A stretch of 62,967 nt of DNA, filler included, from Klebsormidium nitens (Eukaryota > Plantae > Klebsormidiophyceae), in assembly GCA_000708835.1 (NCBI GenBank). It is 4 parts of 4 records of this genome, joined end to end, with 100 filler letters (N's around TTAATTAATTAA, not from the genome) between each part and the next. Parts side by side here need not be neighbours in the genome. Positions count along the whole stretch, not along the records: positions 57,115 to 62,967 come from DF238255.1; 3 more parts are not named here. One strand, given 5' to 3'. The position numbers and the translations under genes were made by a program. Shown one piece after another: positions 1,044 to 62,967 of this stretch (the stretch's first letter is position 1; each line of letters begins with the position of its first letter). A model generated the notes under the pieces. That model had not been told where the DNA came from. It was given only the letters and a program-made list of their open reading frames with translations, and did no database searches.

Positions 1044-4000
1044 ATGGCGTCTACTACGAAGGACGAGACAGACAGCTTGGATCTCAATGGGGAGGAAGAG
1101 GATCAATTTGAACCGCTAGTATCTTCAACAATGGTGAGTGCGCCGCTGCAGCATATGACGCCCAATCCGTCAGACTAATCTTGCTTCAATGTGTTTGCGC
1201 CGTTGCAACATGAAGCTCAAATTCTCTTTGGTTCTTTGACTTTGATTTGAGGGTCAGCAAGATCTCCCGGTTTTGCAAAGGTGTGTGCGGATGCTTCACA
1301 TGTGTTGCAATGTAATCAAGCTTCCGTAGACACTCACGGCACTGGGGGTAAATAGATTTTGGAACATCTGAAAGCCAACAAGATAGAAGGACCCGGTGAG
1401 GAACTGAATTGCATATTGAAATACCTCACAAGGGTTTCTGTTGTCTGTTAAAGCGGCGCCCTCCCACCACCTTTCAATGAAAGCACAACACACCTCTTAC
1501 AGGTCAATGCTGCAATGTCCAATACAGTTTCCTTTGAATGCATATCATTCTTCGAGTAATCTTTCAACTCCTAGCGCTTGCCCCCACAACACAGATTGAG
1601 AGAGCATGCTTTCAATGTCCCCAACCGCTTCCAATGCGCTGTAGCTTTAGACGCTTTCAATCCTTGTAACACCCTCACACAACTCAGACTCAAAGAGCAG
1701 TTCACAAACAAAAGGCAAGACTACTCAAGAAGAGGGGATACAAACGAGGACATACAGCTAGTGTAGGGCTCTCCCTTCAAAGTGTCTAATGAAGGAGCCA
1801 TCCTCTCAATATTCTTTTAAGTATTTCAAAGTGAAAAGTTGACCGGCTCCTGCTCTGCCTACCCACCAACGTGCATCCCTTCAGCCAACTGCAATTCCAA
1901 TTGTGTTTGCAACATTTTCCTCTTGTGCTTTCCAGCCAGGAACTCAGCTCACGGCCAAGCTGATGCGGAGCTTGACCACGCGAATGCAACAGCTGGGAGA
2001 CTCAGGCCAGGAGCGCCTCAGTCTGCTGCCCATTGTTGGCGAGCGGTCCGGTTGGCTGATTGAGCCTTCGGATGTTGAGTTGGGGGAGGTTCTGGGGAAG
2101 GGCTCAACTGCAACGGTGTATAAGAGCCGGTGGCACGGGCTCGATGTGGCTGTCAAAGTGCTGGATCCGTCCTGCTTTGATGACTTGGTAAGTAGGCTTT
2201 TCTGTTGGTGCAATCGGCTTACAGCTTGTTTGGAGGACTGCTTTGTTGGCTGCATACACAAGCCTGCTTGAGATGCGCAGCTCCTAATGCATTCTGACTT
2301 TCAAGAGTTATGGACGGTCAGCTACCCTTTTTGAAGAGCGATAAGTCTCGGTAAACAAGCAATGATGTTCTCTTAGAAGCAAGGTTTTCTGAAGGAGGCA
2401 ATGCCTTCAAATGAGGGCGACACTAAAGTGAGAGCCTCCCTAGAGAAAATGCCTCCTGCTTATGCCTCTGAATGGCCGCAAAGGGTTCCGAAAAGGAACG
2501 CTTCTCGTATTCTTTCTCTGCAGGGCAGCCTGACGTCCTTCTGCCGCGAGCTCGAGCTCTTCTCCACGCAGCGCCACCCGCACATCCTGCCATTCCTCGC
2601 TGGAACCCTCGACATTCCCCACAAGTGCTATGTTGTCACCAGCCTAATGGACAGCACGATGACCATGTGGCTCCACGGGTGCTCGGAACGAAAGTCGACG
2701 CGGCAGATCCCGCTGCCACCGATGAAGGACCGGCTCCGAGTTGGGCTGGAGGTAAGTTTGGGAGGGAGGGTAGAGGGTCCAGAAACCGGGACTTTTGAAT
2801 CCCGTTTGGAGTCTGGTTTGGATCGTATTTGGTATAGTGAATCGGCGGTTGTTGATCTGATGGGCTTATAAATTGCACAATTCTTGAGGAGCTCTAGCAG
2901 CAGTGTGTTTGGGCCCTGGACAAGGAGTCCGCTTGCGGTTTCAAGGTTGCTATCCCTCGTACTTAACAAGCTCAGGTTCCAGTATCCGTGACACCGCAAT
3001 CTGTATCAGAAATGCTCAAAAGTTGATCTCGGCAATCGCTGTCCAGTTTGCGTGAAGCGATTAAACCACTAAGAAGCTCGCTCCTACACCTCACTTTCGT
3101 GGCTCGGCTGGCTGGGTCAACAGGCATAACGACAGAAGTTTCAACATCCATATCCTTTCGCCAATCGCTTCGTTGATTTCACTGTCCCAGGTCGCGCTGG
3201 CGCTTCAACACTTGCACGAGCAAAAGCCCATGATCATTCATAGGTGAGTCGTATAAGCGACCCCACTCCTAAACTTGTCCGTCAGGTTTTGCGGCAAGCA
3301 TGACTTGGTCGGAACGCGGGTACATGAGCTGCACTTTTCCGGTCTCGTTCGACGGGAATTTCAAGAAGCTTCATGGAGGGTTTGCGTTGACTGTAAAAGA
3401 ATGCGCGCTCGCGATAACACACAGCTCGCTCCAACATGTTCGCCACACGTTCGGTCTTTTTAGTATCTCCCACTACCTGAGGTCTTGACGCAATCACAGA
3501 AACTGATCCTGGCGCGTTCGTCGAGTCTAGAGGTCATCCAGACCCTCCCCGTTCCAGCACCTTGACACTTTCAAAACAGAAACTCCTGACTAAGGATTAG
3601 TGTAAAACTTTAAAGAGGGTGTCTGCGGATGCATCCGCATGACGTCATATGGCGACTGCACAGGTTGGCCCTCGGCCGTTTTGTCGCCAAAAAGTCAAAG
3701 TGGCGGTACCATTCCCCGTGCCTGATTTTCTGCTTAGGCGCGACCGGTGCTGACGTTTTGGGCCGCCCCGGGACGACGCCCACTTTAGAGAAAGCCAGCC
3801 AAGTAAAGTTGGTCCGACTTTCTCGAAACGATAGAAACCTGACTTGATCCAGATAGAAACGGCTGCCGCGTTTTCCGCAGGGACCTGAAGCCGTCGAACG
3901 TCTTCATTGGCGGGAATGGCCACGCCTTCCTGTCCGACTTTGGGTTCGCGCGGCTGCTACGACCGGGTGACATCAGCATGACGAGGGCCACAGGTGCTGT

Positions 4001-5959
4001 GCCGGCCTTCCGTTTCCGTCTCTTCCTTTTCTTCTTAGGTCCGAATTTTGAAATGAGGGGAGAAACGATGTCAGCGTGACGAGAGGCAGCCTGTGCTTTG
4101 CTTCCTCCATCTGCTCCGAGTAACCGATTTTTTACTCCTAATACTAAAGTCAAGTGTCTGCTCTGTGTCTCCTTTCTCGGATCTGTCCACTGATTTGTCC
4201 CAACCTTCCTCCGAGCACACACCTCTTAACAGAACGGTACCGCAGTTGTTGTCCCGGCCTGCTTTATGGGCAGTCAGCCCCCGGAACTTAATGCCCCACG
4301 AGCTTTCTAGCTTTCTGGGTTCATACGCACCGAGCAGCTGTCTCCGGTTGCGACCTTCGATTGACTTCCAATAACTCGGTTGAATGTATGGGGGCCTGCT
4401 GGTCTCCAATCCCTGCTGCCCGCATTCCCTCCCTTTCCTTTTTGAGTCGTTTGTTTGATGTTACGGGAACCCTTTCTTCTGCCAGGTACGTTCATGTACA
4501 TGGCACCCGAGGTGATCCGGAGCGACAAGTACGATCAGCGCTGCGATGTGTACAGGTGAGCGCCACCGCATCGCGTCTTCAAGGCTCTCGAGCTTCGACT
4601 GCAGCACCTGACCTTTTGGTGCTCACAAAGTAAATCAAAGGTAGAGGCCTTTCTTTGAGCTGTCCTTACGGGCGCTGTCTGTCAACACCGCTCAATGGCG
4701 ACTGCTTGGGCAGATACTATCTCCCGGCCGCAATCGATTAACGGCGTGGACCCACGCTTGGCTAGGGCTTGGGTCGAGCGTCGTTTAACCTGTGAGGGTT
4801 GATCGACCTTACTCGGGTAAGCTCCTTTAAGTCCGATCTGAGATCGTTCATCTGTGTTTGCAGCTTCGGCGTCCTGCTGAACGAGGTGCTGTGCGGTTAC
4901 CCCCCCTTCATCGAGGTCCGCCAAGCGCCGTTCCAGGTAAGCGGCGGCCAAACCCGTCTATTGATTCATGTGTCGTAAAATCCACGGTACTGAGAATACC
5001 CGGAGTTAAACTGTGCCTAATGGAGAAGCTGGGCCGTCCGATAGCGGAAAGTGGTTGATCAAGAAACGCCCAGTCTCGCTTCCAACTTTGGCCAGGAAGC
5101 CAGGTTGTCGAAATGCGCGGCAAACCATTGAATCTACGCGTCTGCTGACCTTTCCACCGCCTCTTGGAGCCTAGGCAAAGTTCAGGCGTTTGGTTTCTGG
5201 ACCTATATTCAGTCCCGTCATCGAGCCTTCGAAGACTTCTTCCCTCCCTTCTCTTCGACGGTAGATTTCGGTTCTGCTCGTTTCTTCGTTCTGCTCTGTT
5301 CGTCGCCGAGTTGCTTCGCTCCGCCATACCGTTCCGCGATTCGCGGGCAAGTGGCCGCAGTCTGTTCGAACCACGAAAACAGTGCGTTTCTGCACCTTGA
5401 CTTCCTTTGGACCTTCCCGATTGCATCAATTGAACATCCATGCAAGCTTCAACATTGATCACGATCCTCTCACGTTACAGAGGGCCTTGCTTCATCTACA
5501 AAGGCCCAAGTTGATTGTGAACCCTTCAAACCCTTTGTTCCTGAAAGTCTCTTATGGTAAAAGCTTTACTCCGCCAGACATCCCTGTGAAACATTCAGAA
5601 TCATGACTCACCTTCTTCAATTGTTCATATTTCTTTAAAACCTTCGACACTTGAGAATCAGACTCCTAACCCCTTCCTTTCGTTTCCAGATTGCCGAAGC
5701 CGTCGTCAAGGCGGGGATCCGCCCCTTCCTGGTTAAGACCGACGCGGACCCCCGGGTCATAGACCTGATCAAGATGTGCTGGACCCAGGATCCAGATGGA
5801 CGGCCCCCAATGAGCCACGTCACCACCACCCTGCGCGAGATCCTTGCTGACGTGCACAAGGGAAAGAAGAGCCGCAGCGGAAAAGTCAGCGACGGGGCCG
5901 GCAACGAAAGCCGGTCCTCCGTGATGTCACGGCTTTTCAAGACCAAGTCAGGGACGTGA
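1044..5959 (+). CDS. Raf-like (TKL / MAPKKK group C-type) Ser/Thr/Tyr protein kinase, multi-exon
   Basis: Spliced exons reconstruct the kinase subdomains: LGKGSTATVY, VAVK, IIHR|DLKPSN, DFG, GTFMYMAPE, DVYS|FG, CW..DP..RP. The exons have GT-AG borders and the stop is at 5959. The ATG at 1044 and the early exon structure are less certain. Confidence 0.9.
3613..3785. mobile_element. Possible Stowaway/Tc1-mariner-type MITE in a kinase intron
   Basis: TA at 3611-12 and 3786-87 flank an imperfect 11-bp TIR (AAGAGGGTGTC vs reverse complement AAGTGGGCGTC, 9/11). A perfect 16-bp palindrome TGCGGATGCATCCGCA lies at 3624-3639. Confidence 0.3.
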
Positions 5960-57114: not shown

Positions 57115-57216
57115 CTGGATTGATGTGGCGATTGAAGAGTTTCTGGGCGTCCACCACGAAGTACCTAGGTTTCTGATCTGCACTCTACTCTGCACTGGAA
57201 GGTGGATTCTACGTGG

Positions 57217-57876
57217 TCAATGCCAGTCCATCGCGAGAGCTATCTTAGGGAACTGCTCCTTCATGATGCCCTTGACATTCCATGCTATCTCCTTATGCTC
57301 GTCTTGTGTACCGTTGCCGCACCTCAGATCCACGTAATGTATCCAATCCCTCGCGTTCATGGTCATGTACAGCTTAGTCTGCGTGGACATGGGAAGGACG
57401 AAACGGGCGCACTCTTTCGCTATGCCCTTCTCTAGTGCCTGCGTATATGTGGCGTATGAATCCTTCCACAGCCTATCCTGCTCTGCCACGAACCAGGCCT
57501 TCACGTCCGGCGGCAGGTCGTCCACGGACGACTGCCTGTTCTTGGGATCCTGGCTCCTGGCTTCGTAAACCACGTTCGCATCGACCTTTGCATACCTGGT
57601 GCTGAATTGCTGAAAAGTTGCCGACCTGTGCCTCAGGATCTGCTCCGCTATGGCTCTGCTGGTGGTTATCTCCACCGTCATGGAGGCGGTCTCGAAGACC
57701 GACCAGTGACGATTCTTGATACAATAACGCAACAGCCTGGCACCGCTCTCGTAATTCCTCTGGTTCTGGGGATTGGAAACCCGTGCGGCGTGCACTATGA
57801 TGTCCTCGGGACCTAGCCCCTCCAGTTCTCCCGCGCCTCTGCTGAGCGCCACCAGCTTCACCTCGCAAGCTGCCAT
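57217..57876 (-). CDS. thyX: Flavin-dependent thymidylate synthase ThyX, intronless (219 aa from ATG 57876)
   Basis: AARVS, HWSVFE, SRAIAEQILRHRSATFQQFSTRY (RHRX7S signature), KECARFVLP, RDWIHYVDLR and TQDEH. Confidence 0.95.
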   Translation of the reverse strand: MAACEVKLVALSRGAGELEGLGPEDIIVHAARVSNPQNQRNYESGARLLRYCIKNRHWSVFETASMTVEITTSRAIAEQILRHRSATFQQFSTRYAKVDANVVYEARSQDPKNRQSSVDDLPPDVKAWFVAEQDRLWKDSYATYTQALEKGIAKECARFVLPMSTQTKLYMTMNARDWIHYVDLRCGNGTQDEHKEIAWNVKGIMKEQFPKIALAMDWH

Positions 57877-57925
57877 CTTTCTATGTGGACTACAATAATA
57901 CAAGTTCAGTGCCTAAACCGACATA

Positions 57926-58252
57926 TCACTTTCGCAGCATGTTCAGGAAGATCTCGATCATCTCTCCGTGACCCTCCAAGGGGTAGACTCCACCGACCGT
58001 GTGGGCTAGTCGCCAAGAGGTGTGTATCGCCAAGTCTCGGACTCTGGATTCCATACTCAATCTAGGTATGGTGAGAGCCAGCTGCGAGTTCAGTCTACGC
58101 AGACGTTCTCCGTTATCGTCCTTGCAGAGCTCCATCTTGGCGATGATCTCCAGCAGCACCCACACCCGATCTTCCACCGTGGACTCGGGAGACAGAGTCG
58201 AGAATCTCCTTTGGAGCTCGCCCAGGACCTCGGCAGTCGTCCGAAACCACAT
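57926..58252 (-). CDS. Hypothetical 108-aa protein between Fanzor and thyX
   Basis: ATG-initiated intronless ORF, co-oriented and tightly packed with thyX. No family recognised. Confidence 0.45.
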   Translation of the reverse strand: MWFRTTAEVLGELQRRFSTLSPESTVEDRVWVLLEIIAKMELCKDDNGERLRRLNSQLALTIPRLSMESRVRDLAIHTSWRLAHTVGGVYPLEGHGEMIEIFLNMLRK

Positions 58253-58267
58253 CCTTGTCTGACGCTA

Positions 58268-58470
58268 AGGAAATTATTACCATTTTCGCCCAAACTGTCG
58301 CCCGTACCGGGCGCTTGTTCGAACGGAAAATGAATAATAATACCGGATTGAGTCCATACGAGTACGGACTGGTACTGGCTATCCGCGAACCGCCGGGTTA
58401 TGAAGCCCGGTATCCTCGAACAATCCTTATATAGTGGCCGACCGGCAGAACTCCACCGGCCTTGCACGGC
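58268..58470 (-). ncRNA. Putative Fanzor omegaRNA scaffold overlapping the ORF 3' end
   Basis: Dense cluster of stems directly 3' of the nuclease stop: 58393-97/58406-10, 58351-58/58363-70, 58299-303/58309-13, 58273-87/58326-41 and long-range 58315-22/58416-23. Confidence 0.7.
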
Positions 58471-60262
58471 CTTCCAGCCGCAGCCTAAGCAGCCTCAGGA
58501 TATTGCGGGCGGCGTTCACGTCTCGGTTCACCGTCATGCCATTACAGCCACTGTTTCTGCAGTGGAGCACACTGTGAACTTTGACGGTCTTCACCGCCCC
58601 ATCCTTGCACCGCTTCTCCGAGTACTGGTTGCGCAGCTGCATCTTGCAATCGAAGTGGAGCTTGCTGGTCCTGAACTCGTCCATCGAGACCACCCTGCAA
58701 TGCTTGCGGAGCTCTCGCTCCAGCCGCTTCACGGGCCCAGAAGGAGACCCCCTGATGATGCCTCCGGAGTCCTTGTTCGACCAGTCTCCGAAGCCCACAA
58801 CCGTCTTGCAACCCACTCGCCTTGTTATGGCTTTGCAGAGCGCATACAGCTTCTTCTGCGCCGAGATGTACCGCTTGAACTTGAGCCCTCTGAATCCCTG
58901 CCTCATGTGGTAGACGAGCAACATGTCCAGCCTGGGCAGAATGAAGTGCAGGTAAGCGAGGAACTTGGTGCTCTCCGAGGTCTTCTTGGTGGGCATATTG
59001 CGGATAGCCTCGAGCACCTCCGGGCTCTTATCGTACCACCGCTTGATCTTGGCGTTGCTGTGCTTGTACTTGGCGTCGCCATAAAACTCTCGGGTAGAGC
59101 ACTTCAGCTTCTCTCCTTCCTCATTGACCATGACAAAGAGGTCTCGCCTGCCAGGGTCTAGGCCCCACAGCTCCTCTTCTCCCGTGAGGTCAGGGAGCGT
59201 TGCTTCGCCTGAGGCTTGCTTGGGCTTGGGTTTCCTCAACACGATGCACACGGCCTTTCCGTCCGTGAGGATCTCACCTGCAAACTTGCGGTTGCATGTC
59301 TCAAACTTAGCAATGTCGAAGAGGTCCCTCCAGTAGTCGTCTGCCACCTTCCTGAACTGAGCTCCCGAGGCCGGAAGCTCAACCCCTCCCCTCTTGAGCA
59401 GCCCATACAGTCCGTTAGTGCACATCTTGAGGTGATTGCACTCGAAGCCCCTCTTCGTAGGCAGCAGGCTGAAGAGCCTCAGCTGCTTGCCATTCTTCAG
59501 CTCCTCTTCCGTCAGGGGGTGATGAGACTCCATGTAGCGCAGGAACATGTATTGCATCGGCATGAGTATGTGAGGGGAGGAGTCCGCCCTGCCAGTGGTG
59601 GCTTTGGGAAGCATGGCTCGATACCTCAATACTAGTTGGTCGTCGCCTTCATACTCATCGGCGAACATGCCTCTCATCTTTGCGTAGCACGAAGGGCCGT
59701 CTAGTGAGTACTTGTGCTTCAGGTAGCGCTTGAAGCGCTTGTAGAAGTTTGTGGCGATTGAATTCTTGGTGCATGTAGCCATCTGAAGACTGGCGTTCTG
59801 ATACCAGCCGGAAGAGAGATGCTCGGAATCTGGAGGCACGTAGTTAGCAGGGCGTGATGCCAGGTAGAGCTCTACGGTCTCCCTGAGGTAGAGGTCTTTG
59901 ACGGAGCTCTTCTGCCTGCCAGCCACGCTGACGGCGGAGAGGCAGTTGTAGAAGAAGGGCTGATCCAGAGGTGGCACCTCACGGCCCAACTCACACATCC
60001 GTAGTACATGAAGGTTAGCAAGGATGTAGGCTTCACAGATAGCCTTATTCACTTCCTTGAGCACGCTCTCCAGAGGGAGGGCCCTGGCAGCCTCCTTGTA
60101 GAAGCTGTTCAGGCTGGTCATGACCACGGTGCATTCGGTCTCTTTGTTCCTCAGGGCCCGGAGCTTGACGTCCTCTCGGGTCCTAGGCTCTTTGAAGAGC
60201 TTGCTCACGTAGGCCAGGCATTCATGGTGGAGAGCGACGTCGGGGGGCTTCTTTGGTGGCAT
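58427..60262 (-). CDS. Fanzor (Fanzor1-like) TnpB-derived RuvC endonuclease, intronless, 611 aa from ATG 60262
   Basis: RuvC-I WGLDPGRRDL, VGFGDWS, shifted RuvC-II VSMDEFRTSK, Zn-finger HFDC...CRNSGC and RuvC-III NRDVNAARNI. The N-terminus MPPKKP is NLS-like. No internal stops. Confidence 0.92.
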   Translation of the reverse strand: MPPKKPPDVALHHECLAYVSKLFKEPRTREDVKLRALRNKETECTVVMTSLNSFYKEAARALPLESVLKEVNKAICEAYILANLHVLRMCELGREVPPLDQPFFYNCLSAVSVAGRQKSSVKDLYLRETVELYLASRPANYVPPDSEHLSSGWYQNASLQMATCTKNSIATNFYKRFKRYLKHKYSLDGPSCYAKMRGMFADEYEGDDQLVLRYRAMLPKATTGRADSSPHILMPMQYMFLRYMESHHPLTEEELKNGKQLRLFSLLPTKRGFECNHLKMCTNGLYGLLKRGGVELPASGAQFRKVADDYWRDLFDIAKFETCNRKFAGEILTDGKAVCIVLRKPKPKQASGEATLPDLTGEEELWGLDPGRRDLFVMVNEEGEKLKCSTREFYGDAKYKHSNAKIKRWYDKSPEVLEAIRNMPTKKTSESTKFLAYLHFILPRLDMLLVYHMRQGFRGLKFKRYISAQKKLYALCKAITRRVGCKTVVGFGDWSNKDSGGIIRGSPSGPVKRLERELRKHCRVVSMDEFRTSKLHFDCKMQLRNQYSEKRCKDGAVKTVKVHSVLHCRNSGCNGMTVNRDVNAARNILRLLRLRLEGRARPVEFCRSATI

Positions 60263-60509
60263 TAGACCACCCCTATGCGTCTCCTTAGGAAAATAGATCT
60301 CGGGAATTTTACGCACGGCCCAGGTTATGTATACGAGCCTAGCGCTTATAATGTAGGACTCTCGTACACATCAACGAAACAGGTGATTATATGCAACAAT
60401 CGTTTTCCATTTGCGTCCAACCGGGCGGTTTCGCGCGACACTTTCGACGAAAACGGTAATAAATCGATCCATGCGCCCGAAGTCGAACTTTCGGACGGTA
60501 TGCTCGCAG

Positions 60510-60705
60510 TTTTTTCACGCCCGAAACCGACCTCCCGAGAAATTTCTTTCGGGCGCCACCTCTCGCGGAAATATACTCGGAGGGTTTTCACGCCCGAAAC
60601 CGACCGCCCGAGAAATTTCTTTCGGGTGCCACCTTTCGCAAAAATATGCCCGCAGTTTTTCGGCGCCCGAAACCGACCGCCCGAGAAGTTTCTTTCGGGC
60701 GCCTT
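60510..60705. repeat. 73-bp tandem repeat x3, each with a 9-bp inverted pair
   Basis: CGCCCGAAACCGAC..CCCGAGAA(A/G)TTTCTTTCGGG(C/T)GCC starts at 60518, 60591 and 60664. CGCCCGAAA / TTTCGGGCG pair within each unit. Degenerate copies lie near 60474 and 60743. Confidence 0.9.
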
Positions 60706-60773
60706 TCAAGCAGTATGCTTCGCGGTATGCCTCAAGCGAAAGCCAGAGAAGTACTTTTCGGACGGAGATCGCT

Positions 60774-60787
60774 CTATAAAAAGAGGT
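60774..60787 (+). promoter_or_regulatory. Candidate TATA box
   Basis: CTATAAAAAGAGGT lies just after the 73-bp repeats and before a pyrimidine-rich tract. The identical 14-mer is on the minus strand at 40333-40346. Confidence 0.45.
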
Positions 60788-61576
60788 CCCTCTCGTTCTC
60801 ATTCTCAAAAACGCACTTGGCCTCCCCCTTCCCAACAGCTCGCAAGCAACTCCCTCGCACACAGCATCCTTCTGCCTATCTGCCTTTTCAGCAGCGGCAC
60901 AGCTTAGCCGCTTCCCTCTTTTCCCAACAGCACCCTATTCTCCCACAGCTCGCTTCCCTTCCGTCCACTCACCAGCCAGCAGCACCTCATACTCGCATAG
61001 CTCGCTTCCTCCAACACCAGCAGCAACGAGGCCAAGTCGCGTCAGATAGTCACGCCGGCCGGCCTTTTGCCTTGTCCTTGTTTTCCTTTTTGCTGGTCTG
61101 CGCAGACCTCTCTTTTCTTCTCCGTGTCTCTGCAAGCCTGGCCAGGCTGTCGTGTCATGCTGCTCTTCGGCAGCTTTTTTTCTTGCCGTGTCTTAGCTGG
61201 GCTCCCGCTTCTTTGCGGCTCCCCTCCACTGTTTCTGTCTTTCGCTGGCCTCTCGGGCCTTGTAGCTGCCTCGTGCAGTTCCCTTCCGAGAAGTATCAAG
61301 GTGAGTATTAGTGAAGTAGGATAAATTGAAGTTACTCTATGATCGGCTTCTCGTTTGCTTTGCAAAATATTTGCATAGAAATGTTCCCTCTGTTGCTCTC
61401 CAATCTCGTTGTTTGCAGAACCCTCGCATCGACTACCTCCTGAGGCTCCGCTCGCATCCGTTAGCTGGCCTCTCGGCCCTTGCAGCTGCCTTGTGCCGCT
61501 CCACTCCTACCAATCAGATAAGTTCCCTCTCTTGCTCTCCAAACTTCTGATGTTTGCAGCATCCTGCCTCCTTGAG

Positions 61577-61780
61577 GCTCCGCTCGCACCCGTCGGGCAG
61601 GGTGCCGATAAGAGCGAGCATTTGTGGCTCTGTGGGTAGTGCCGTTTGTCCACGGTACGCATACCACTCTGCCTGTAGGCTCCGCTCGCACCCGTCGGGC
61701 AGGGTGCCCATAAGAGCGAGCACTTGTGGCTCTGTGGGTAGTGCCGTTTGTCCACGGTACGCATACCACTCTGCCTTTTC
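61577..61780 (+). repeat. 102-bp tandem duplication
   Basis: GCTCCGCTCGCACCCGTCGGGCAGGGTGCC...CATACCACTCTGCC starts at 61577 and 61679. Confidence 0.9.
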
Positions 61781-62344
61781 ACTCCGTCTGACGATGTTGA
61801 AAAGCTGTCCGAGCTACTGGTCACTTTTATCTCCACTCGCAGGTCCGAGTCATCGAGCCTTTTGACGAGCGGACGCGACTGGAGATCACTACCATGTGCC
61901 TCGTCTACGATCAGGGGCTCGACACGCCGTCTATGGTCCAGGTTTGAATCAAACAGAGGCAAGTCTCGACTGACTCTTCGAATGCCTTCGCTGCTGAGTC
62001 ATATGCACAGGGCGTTTCGTTCCTTCGTAGCAGCAATGACTTGTGGTCAGAAAATTCCCCTGCCGCCTTTGTCACAAGAGTAACATGTTTCTTTTTCTTC
62101 TTACAGGATAAAATTCGCCGCATGGAGGAGTCTTCGTTTGTGACTCTGAGTCCTTTTTCTGGGCGTGTGCAATGGATTTTTCTACGTGACGTGATTCTGG
62201 GTTCTTTTCTGGGCATGTGGAATGATTTTTTGTGTGACTTTTCTTCGACTCTTTGGCTGTCTGTCTGTCTTTCTGTCTCTGTCGAGTCGGTCGGTCGGTC
62301 GGTCCGTCGAGTCCAGTCCTGTCCAGTCCTGTCCAGTCGGTCAG

Positions 62345-62655
62345 TCCCACCAACTATACACACCCTACACTAGACACCCTACACTATACACACCCCTCAC
62401 CCTCTTACCCACTCCAAATACCCTACTGCCTTACCCTTCCCTCCCACACACCCTACTTCTTAACCCTTTCCTCCTACATACCCTACTACCCTTACCTATC
62501 CCTCACACCCTAATACTACCCTTACCTATCCCTCACACCCTAATACTACCCTTACCTATCCCTCACACCCTATACTACCCTTACGTATCCCTCGCACCCC
62601 ACTGCCTAATTACCTCCCTCACACCACCCTATACTACCCTTACCTATCCCTCAAA
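62345..62655. repeat. Nearly G-free C/A/T minisatellite including a 30-bp unit x3
   Basis: CTTACCTATCCCTCACACCCTAATACTACC starts at 62491, 62521 and 62551 (last copy diverged), embedded in related CCCTA-type repeats. Confidence 0.9.
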
Positions 62656-62669
62656 CACACCCGCAGTAG

Positions 62670-62722
62670 AACCACAGATGGCTGCTGCGACCCGCAGCTG
62701 GGGTTCGATTCCCCATGTGGTT
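62670..62722 (+). other. tRNA-like fold lacking a D-arm
   Basis: 7-bp AACCACA/TGTGGTT stem, 6-bp hairpin GCTGCG/CGCAGC, and a perfect T-arm TGGGG-TTCGATT-CCCCA directly abutting the 3' acceptor strand. Confidence 0.4.
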
Positions 62723-62967
62723 GGACGATGTGGCACATCGAAATATTGCCGGTTGAGATTACTGGTTGTGAGTAGGTTTCCTAGTATACTTTCTTCTCTA
62801 GATCATGAAGACTACAACCAGCAACCGGCAAGGTTGGGGAACTTAAGGGAGTTCCGAGATCGATCTGTACAATCTGAGATAGATCAGATCGATCACCCCT
62901 TTTCTTAGGGCCTCTGAAAAATGGTCCGGTTGCCGGTTGCTGGATGGTGACGTGGCACCTCGAAAAG

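Follow-up and report, generated by a model that had tools for sequence, protein, structure and literature searches.

In eukaryotes, TnpB and Cas12 have their counterparts in the Fanzors, which are of interest as compact genome editors. Here, a Fanzor1 locus of the streptophyte alga Klebsormidium nitens is described, which lies in the last part of a stretch of 62,967 nucleotides, filler included, that is called the window (all positions count along it). This part, a piece of 5,853 bp at positions 57,115 to 62,967, is 100% identical to scaffold DF238255.1 of K. nitens NIES-2285 (GCA_000708835.1). A first interpretation of the DNA, the sequence-only reading, had placed an intact Fanzor gene there. 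The locus very probably encodes an intact Fanzor1, a TnpB-derived and omegaRNA-guided endonuclease for double-stranded DNA, together with its candidate omegaRNA region; the gene is the only one of a transposase-deleted element bounded by terminal inverted repeats (TIRs) and one of about six diverged copies in K. nitens. The element and its parts are the following:

58274..60462, minus strand: the whole mobile element, 2,189 bp, composed of left TIR, 5' non-coding region, open reading frame (ORF), 3' non-coding region and right TIR
60432..60462, minus strand: left-end TIR, 31 nt, 84% complementary to 58274-58304, with TTATTACC as its outermost bases
60263..60431, minus strand: 5' non-coding region, ~170 bp that separate the left TIR from the start codon
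58427..60262, minus strand: Fanzor1 ORF, 611 aa plus stop, an uninterrupted frame from a conserved ATG
Within the ORF, putative active site: RuvC-I D369; glycine at the canonical RuvC-II site (G-F-G-D-W, 490-494); relocated RuvC-II E529; RuvC-III D581
Within the ORF, probable zinc site: H536-x-x-C539 with C568/C573
58274..58426, minus strand: conserved 3' non-coding region, candidate omegaRNA/fRNA scaffold, 153 nt from the stop codon to the right end
58274..58304, minus strand: right-end TIR; it ends in GGTAATAA on the ORF strand, and the candidate RNA scaffold overlaps it with its 3' end
58254..58273, minus strand: predicted guide segment, made up of the ~20 nt of flank that follow the right end, just upstream of the ATG at 58252

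The uninterrupted 611-aa ORF that had been proposed at 58427-60262 was borne out, on the minus strand. The ATG at 60262 is the start common to the other copies, in which the ~50 bp upstream of it are conserved too, and the frame is open further 5' to a GTG at 60316, from which a protein of 629 aa would result. The stop codon is found at the same place in all full-length relatives. Since the protein aligns end to end and without gaps with several 611-aa relatives, there is no sign of an intron in the ORF, as the sequence-only reading had stated. Its claim of a basic N-terminus is only weakly true, with 6 K and R against 4 D and E in the first 30 residues and a PPKKPP patch at residues 2-7; the protein as a whole is basic, with a pI of 9.6.

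The best protein matches to the ORF are from K. nitens. In an alignment of 42 relatives, which are 37-96% identical, D369, E529 and D581 are invariant in 42/42; these are the three RuvC acidic residues that had been recognised in the motifs LDPG, MDEFRTSK and NRDVNAARN, all of which are present in the ORF. G490, G492 and D493 are invariant as well, and E529 lies 37 residues past G492. It was reported that in all Fanzors the canonical RuvC-II glutamate is changed to Gly or Pro and that an alternative conserved glutamate lies ~45 residues downstream (PMC10530073). The glycine at the canonical site and the invariant E529 downstream of it therefore constitute a rearranged RuvC-II of the Fanzor type, which fits the displaced glutamate of the earlier interpretation. 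For the zinc finger, the HxxC first pair that had been claimed was found as H536-x-x-C539; C539, C568 and C573 are invariant in the alignment, whose sequences have either H (30) or C (12) at position 536.

Among solved structures, phmmer gave a sole match, the Fanzor1 of Spizellomyces punctatus, SpuFz1 (8GKH, E 4e-10). D369, E529 and D581 align to residues 777, 935 and 1000 of the 8GKH chain, which correspond to D383, E541 and D606 when the fusion-tag offset of 394 is taken off, and these were named as the metal-coordinating residues of SpuFz1 (Saito et al., 2023, PMC10432273). An AlphaFold2 model built from the 42-sequence alignment reached a pLDDT of 86.8 and a pTM of 0.82. The top seven matches of this model in a Foldseek search of the PDB are SpuFz, Parasitella PpFz and Guillardia GtFz (E 1e-19 to 1e-23, template modelling (TM) score 0.61-0.68), which match over the whole length with ~630 aligned columns, and Cas12f, mimivirus Fanzor2 and TnpB score at TM <= 0.32, query-normalised. 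The solved Fanzor1 structures are composed of WED, a large REC, a split RuvC and TNB. Comparison by structure with TnpB, Cas12f and Fanzor1/2, part of a check that the sequence-only reading had suggested, thus put Fanzor1 at the top. Among predicted viral structures, full-length matches with TM up to 0.78 were found, including Homavirus, Tetraselmis virus 1, Yasminevirus and Klosneuvirus. Two other identities were rejected: that of a prokaryotic TnpB, with 25.5 bits against a cut-off of 100 for the NCBIfam model NF040570 and with the glycine at the canonical RuvC-II site, and that of a Fanzor2, with a TM of 0.27 to ApmFz2 (9b0l) and with no serine recombinase found in the piece.

The Fanzor1 family is large, since an exhaustive HMMER search returned 2,444 cluster representatives at E <= 1e-3, with 290 at E <= 1e-30. 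Relatives are present in Coccomyxa, Asterochloris, oomycetes and virus-like contigs; the oomycete proteins are 46-51% identical, and that of Globisporangium (Pythium) ultimum is 50% identical. A metagenome scan gave one locus at 51% identity, and scans of viral_contigs with the protein and with the 42-sequence alignment gave distant relatives only (21-43% identical). The protein MBX8645053.1 (P0009, annotated as 'MAG: transposase', i.e., from a metagenome-assembled genome (MAG)), encoded on a 3.3-kb contig, is 56% identical to the window protein over the full length. It carries the label Thermoplasmata archaeon / Candidatus Sysuiplasma superficiale, and its contig is probably an algal or algal-virus contig that was binned into an archaeal MAG.

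Eight loci, which are told apart here by L numbers, were examined for intactness of the Fanzor gene, and three of the eight are intact: the window copy, a second K. nitens copy on DF238570.1 (L001) and a metagenomic copy (L003). L016 has two frame changes, and L013, L014 and L015 have one each, L014 and L015 being one element from two samples. L002 has an assembly gap of 651 N within it and departs from the other copies directly after the stop codon. Against L001, the non-synonymous divergence (dN) is 0.021 and the synonymous divergence (dS) 0.332, which gives a dN/dS of 0.065; against L003, dN/dS is 0.092 at a dS of 1.24. Because a high dS is combined with a dN/dS of 0.065-0.092, the Fanzor copies are old and the protein was kept, which means that the Fanzor1 protein has been under long-term purifying selection and is not the product of a recent burst.

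The RNA partner is expected in the 3' non-coding region, 153 nt that follow the stop codon and reach as far as the right end. This region is 94.8% identical to that of L001, where dS is 0.33, and 85% identical to that of L003 (~90% without one 10-nt loop insertion), where dS is 1.24. The segment 58255-58470 folds with -84.3 kcal/mol and a z of -3.9 against shuffles. In an alignment of six copies, the 55 predicted pairs are 94.7% paired and there are 16 one-sided changes, which are wobble-compatible; one copy is without one complete hairpin and two copies have a loop insertion, and indels occur nowhere else in the region. KnFNuc, a Fanzor1 of K. nitens, was reported to co-purify with RNA from the 3' non-coding region that abuts the right end (PMC10530073). 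Based on the conservation of the 3' region, its stable fold and the published position of the KnFNuc RNA, 58274-58426 is taken as a candidate for the expected omegaRNA scaffold, by analogy with KnFNuc, and its 5' limit may lie within the end of the ORF. The earlier statement that the gene is complete with its omegaRNA agrees with this, and the region named with it, 58240-58500, covers the candidate scaffold and the ~20 nt beyond 58274. No Rfam family matched the 3' region, and a 16-nt exact pattern from it gave six chance matches in viral_contigs, with no Fanzor nearby. For TnpB and Fanzor, the flank 3' of the omegaRNA was shown to act as guide (PMC10432273; PMC10530073), and in analogy the segment 58254..58273 would provide the guide, its role and its length being predicted from these systems. 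The flank beyond the right end differs in every copy.

The boundaries of the element are defined by its relatives. The similarity of all related copies to the window stops exactly at 58274 and at 60462, and in L002, L013, L014 and L016 it starts exactly at the left terminus. The terminus pattern has two matches in the window, namely both ends of the element, where 0 are expected; it is found as facing pairs in L013, L014, L015, L016 and L017, and the ends are common to five or six copies. The unit measures 2,189 bp in the window, 2,187 bp in L016, 2,205 bp in L013 and 3,174 bp in L014/L015. The extra DNA of L014/L015 lies between the left TIR and the Fanzor gene, at the place of 60263..60431, and encodes a 320-aa transposase with the domains DDE_3 (5e-19) and HTH_33 (2e-08) and a weak Tc3-type helix-turn-helix (HTH_Tnp_Tc3_2); L003 retains a transposase remnant of the last ~70 codons only. 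Since related copies carry the DDE_3 transposase between the same ends, the window copy belongs to a Tc1/mariner-type (DDE_3) family as a non-autonomous member that has lost the transposase. The sequence-only reading had noted that no transposase accompanies the gene: this stands for the piece, in which tblastn with the transposase of the relatives gave no match and the tested long flank ORFs, a part of those listed, gave no Pfam domain, but it does not stand for the family, because relatives with the same TIRs carry it. The 5' non-coding region 60263..60431 is common to the K. nitens copies L001, L002 and L016; of the metagenomic copies, only the ~50 bp nearest the ATG are alike, the rest having diverged or been replaced. 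A promoter or 5' untranslated region may be presumed here. A solitary third match to the terminus pattern is located at 14204-14218 of L013, ~5.6 kb past the element on a virus-like contig, and may be a solo end.

An empty site is present in the same genome. Both flanks of the element have collinear counterparts on the K. nitens scaffold DF237962.1 (L018), from which the 2,189 bp of the element are missing; the identity is 93% over window positions 57199-58273 and 91% over 60446-62967, and the two matches meet to within a few bases. As L018 has both flanks without the element, the latter is a discrete insertion, or it was lost from L018. As L018 also keeps the thyX segment that adjoins the element in the window, the presence of the element is independent of this segment. 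Each copy is framed as T-TA[element]TA-A, and other direct repeats were not found outside the frame. The frame would fit a TA duplication in a TTAA site, with the register uncertain. At the empty site, the T-rich sequence 9976-9992 of L018 has a weak likeness to the left TIR in its outer 17 nt (window 60446-60463), which is why the blastn match extended into this repeat; the likeness may be due to chance or reflect a target preference.

In the annotation of K. nitens, six Fanzor1 loci are found, GAQ93531, GAQ91713, GAQ93111, GAQ93595, GAQ92330 and KFL_006700050/60, and the copies differ by 4-14% at the protein level. Exact look-ups of the Fanzor and of the neighbouring ThyX of the window gave no match, since in the public record both are present only as one chimeric model of 830 aa, GAQ93111.1, which belongs to the cluster of the best protein match and is labelled 'thymidylate synthase (FAD)' (FAD: flavin adenine dinucleotide), which spans window positions 57217-60262 (= L017 6302-9347). 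Its residues 1-607 are 100% identical to the Fanzor1 ORF and its residues 612-830 are 100% identical to the product of the adjoining thyX, so that this gene model is a chimera of Fanzor1 and ThyX. Through its 'intron', the model loses the stop codon of the Fanzor gene along with the conserved 3' region, the right TIR and a 108-aa ORF.

The closest system with known activity is KnFNuc, for which formation of a ribonucleoprotein (RNP), a TTA target-adjacent motif (TAM) and focused cuts in both strands were reported (Jiang et al., 2023, PMC10530073). It edits in human cells with up to 2%, and its gene was described as intronless and present in 5 copies (PMC10530073). KnFNuc and the window copy have in common the species and the assembly, membership in Fanzor1, the lack of introns, the presence in several copies and, as a candidate in the window copy, a 3' RNA region that adjoins the right end. 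In the window family, the left junction invariably reads T-TA, in agreement with the TTA TAM of KnFNuc; the paper counts 5 copies where the annotation used here gives six loci. Hence the Fanzor1 family of the window is already known, with activity published for a K. nitens Fanzor1; the locus is likewise already known, as it is public K. nitens sequence of a family with published activity, and it does not represent a new kind of enzyme, since the K. nitens Fanzor1 is already known to be RNA-guided and reprogrammable. Newly found here are the boundaries of the element, the empty site for it, relatives on virus-like DNA that bear a transposase, measures of selection and an error in the public annotation.

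SpuFz1 (PDB 8GKH, 9CEU-9CEZ) is similar to the window protein in its whole-length fold (TM 0.66-0.68, E 1e-23), and its catalytic residues D383/E541/D606 align to D369/E529/D581. Its element has a single ORF, ~2.1 kb and ~30-nt inverted repeats (PMC10432273), in comparison to 2.19 kb and 31 nt here. However, the two proteins share only 18% identity, N385 of SpuFz1 corresponds to G371, the first zinc ligand is a Cys in SpuFz1 and a His in the window protein, and the TAM is CATA for SpuFz1 (PMC10432273) in contrast to the TTA reported for the K. nitens enzyme. Fanzor1 proteins in TIR-bounded Tc/mariner elements with TA duplications were described from oomycetes (Pythium ultimum) and algal viruses (Bao and Jurka, 2013, PMC3627910), and of the elements PUl-1, PUl-4 and PGv-1 some have a Mariner transposase and some Fanzor1 only (PMC3627910). 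The family described here likewise exists in two forms, of 3,174 bp with DDE_3 and of ~2,190 bp without; the likeness to PUl-1, PUl-4 and PGv-1 is one by description, and a TA duplication is presumed for the copies here. With the prokaryotic ancestors and relatives ISDra2 TnpB and Cas12f, the window protein shares the RuvC fold, a probable zinc-ribbon (TNB) insertion and a predicted guide RNA from the 3' end of the element itself, but its glutamate is relocated, its REC part is much larger, the TM is <= 0.32, and TIRs with a DDE partner are found where TnpB has an IS200/IS605 or IS607 partner. The mimivirus Fanzor2 (Acanthamoeba polyphaga mimivirus, PDB 9B0L) is also a TnpB derivative borne by eukaryotes or viruses, with a rearranged RuvC-II; in contrast to it (TM 0.27, E 6e-06), the window element has no IS607-type serine recombinase.

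Several points weigh against the interpretation as an intact, RNA-guided Fanzor1 in a TIR element. The Pfam model PF07282 (OrfB_Zn_ribbon/Cas12f1-like TNB) scores 23.3 bits at the C-terminus, below its cut-off of 26.3, and the NCBIfam model guided_TnpB (NF040570) reaches its 25.5 of 100 bits over the last 45 residues only; the C-terminal part of an intact relative clears the PF07282 cut-off with 28.2 bits, and the window Fanzor1 probably has a C-terminal zinc ribbon. That D369, E529 and D581 form one catalytic site is predicted from the alignment. RNA-guided, TAM-dependent DNA cleavage is predicted for the window copy, and cutting by this copy itself is expected in analogy to the published K. 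nitens Fanzor1, where KnFNuc may be either the window copy or a sister that is 86-96% identical. In the six-copy RNA alignment, there are 0 compensatory pairs and 185/500 shuffles do as well, the six copies being too similar to one another for covariation to be demonstrated. Regarding insertion, the TA lies inside the invariant T-TA / TA-A frame and is inseparable from the termini, so that a TA duplication cannot be proven from the frame. Nor can it be read at L018, because the junction there has diverged by small indels in a T-rich run; the present L018 junction is without TA or TTA, which leaves the TAM argument unconfirmed.

Outside the element, the piece contains the following features:

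57217..57876, minus strand: thyX, encoding an FAD-dependent thymidylate synthase of 219 aa, short viral type (Pfam Thy1 8e-51, TIGR02170 5e-53)
57926..58252, minus strand: 108-aa ORF between the element and thyX, whose ATG is the start of the L018 thyX model P0247
60463..62967, no strand assigned: repeat-rich flank with no gene recognised, collinear with L018 at 91% identity
60512-60703 and 61575-61776: tandem repeats in this flank, 73 bp x2.6 and 102 bp x2, respectively
62281-62653: low-complexity C/T-rich runs in this flank

The ATG of the 108-aa ORF is 21 bp from the right end of the element, and since it is also the start of the paralogous thyX model, the element adjoins this model at its 5' edge. 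No homologues and no Pfam domain were found for the 108-aa ORF. The tandem repeats and low-complexity runs of the flank are all common to the paralogous scaffold L018. A sub-threshold Rfam match to mascRNA-menRNA at 62671-62721 on the plus strand (23.8 bits against a gathering threshold of 42.5, E 0.19) is probably due to chance, and no tRNA was found by ARAGORN. On L018, a different TnpB/Fanzor-like ORF of 657 aa is located at 2434-4407 on the minus strand, with Cas12f1-like TNB (65 bits) and HTH_OrfB_IS605 domains; the annotation puts it together with a Resolvase domain into a single gene model. This IS607/Fanzor2-like system lies ~5.5 kb from the paralogous thyX, beside a gene for an MIP aquaporin.

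The viral character of the neighbourhood raises the possibility that the element is a passenger in endogenised giant-virus DNA with a viral-type thyX, the piece then being an integrated phycodnavirus-like fragment. The best solved relatives of the thyX product are 4FZB and 2CFA with 242 bits, the next-best solved ThyX reaching 83 bits; 4FZB is the ThyX of the chlorovirus PBCV-1, and 2CFA is presumably its apo structure. The ThyX is thus nearest to PBCV-1 among solved structures, as the passenger reading would have it. The closest thyX relatives outside K. nitens are 84% identical on a 2.3-kb contig, which reveals nothing of the genomic context, and 70% identical on giant-virus-like contigs, which carry an AEP_C962R primase, DUF5906, DUF5760 and the EsV_1_7_cys motif. 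Copies of the element that are 78-79% identical in the coding part (L003, L013 and L014/L015) are located in the metagenomes JGI 3300060284 and 3300060285, the same ones as the 70% thyX relative, where their neighbours encode TFIIS, a capping methyltransferase, ribonucleotide reductase, Bro-N, a UvrD-like helicase and a D5-like helicase. Moreover, phycodnavirus-like core genes were reported from the K. flaccidum/nitens genome (PMC5294986). Against this, a paralogous thyX segment exists without the element, from which it follows that the insertion (or loss) of the element was separate from the arrival of thyX, and other K. nitens copies adjoin annotated multi-exon gene models with the cellular domains zf-MYND and WD40. 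Besides thyX and Fanzor, the flanks have no protein-level similarity to the virus-like contigs, the flank is repeat-rich and not gene-dense, and both K. nitens contigs end just past thyX; around the thyX relatives L009, L010 and L011, no synteny was found beyond thyX. Consequently, of the virus-like thyX context of the sequence-only reading, the PBCV-1-type thyX with its 70% relative on a giant-virus-like contig holds, whereas the repeat-rich flanks share no other gene. Taken together, we consider it possible, if on balance unlikely, that the element is such a passenger. As to the virus-like contigs themselves, the large subunit of ribonucleotide reductase and the UvrD-like helicase were called in several pieces (L013 1667-4835; L014 13101-14222). 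Genes split in this way may point to viral DNA in decay, perhaps endogenised, or to inteins, and because several genes are in pieces the contigs are possibly endogenised rather than free viral DNA.

The copy might also be transcriptionally repressed in the alga, e.g., by cytosine methylation, and inactive in spite of its intact appearance, having been conserved through recent selection on the family as a whole only. Genes of viral ancestry were reported to be enriched in the methylated fraction of K. nitens (PMC12344493), and a transposase that could mobilise the element was not found in the piece. Several sister copies are decaying, with two frame changes in L016, one each in L013 and L014/L015, and the divergence of L002 3' of the stop codon. 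However, the dS of 0.33 with a dN/dS of 0.065 to the nearest fetched intact K. nitens copy argues against silence, as do the conservation of the 3' RNA region well above that of synonymous sites and the published active RNP from a K. nitens Fanzor1 locus, so that a silent copy appears unlikely. It is highly improbable that the annotation is right and that a Fanzor-like N-terminus is spliced to ThyX in one 830-aa fusion, as a domesticated host gene: the annotation does link residues 1-607 of the ORF to a complete ThyX and both genes are on the same strand, 550 bp apart, but the ORF has its own stop codon, placed as in all full-length relatives, the intron would delete this stop together with the conserved 3' RNA region and the right TIR, the ORF lies within a TIR-bounded insertion that is absent at the paralogous thyX locus, where the thyX model stands alone with 253 aa, and no relative except model GAQ93111.1 shows such a fusion, for which reasons this candidate was rejected.

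For the intact Fanzor1 in its transposase-deleted element, a mechanism can be proposed in analogy to known systems. A transcript that covers the 3' end of the ORF and extends across the right end would yield a structured RNA, as established elsewhere. The scaffold of ~150 nt (58274-58426) would bind to the protein, with the guide provided by the ~20 nt of flank that follow. The RuvC site composed of D369, the relocated E529 and D581, as judged from the alignment, would cut both strands beside a 5' TTA motif. An unoccupied site of the TTAA type would present TTA directly 5' of the flank that matches the guide, and an occupied site would present ATA. The nuclease might then act on empty sites and spare its own copy, as was proposed for TnpB, the register being uncertain.

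More speculatively, and in our estimation improbable as a whole, the element family may move between a phycodnavirus-like giant virus and the nucleus of its streptophyte host, with the transposase-bearing form on virus-like DNA and with Fanzor-only derivatives kept by selection for the recognition of unoccupied TTA-flanked sites. If this were true, the window copy, which ends 21 bp before the first ATG in a thyX model of viral type, would mark an exchange between virus and host. Apart from this, the analysis provides a corrected annotation, in which the 'thymidylate synthase' GAQ93111.1 is a Fanzor1-ThyX chimera, and a natural pair of an occupied and an empty site within one genome. The protein, with a dN/dS of ~0.07, and the 3' RNA region have both been constrained for a long time in copies that are without a transposase, which bears on the question of what role Fanzors have for the elements that carry them.

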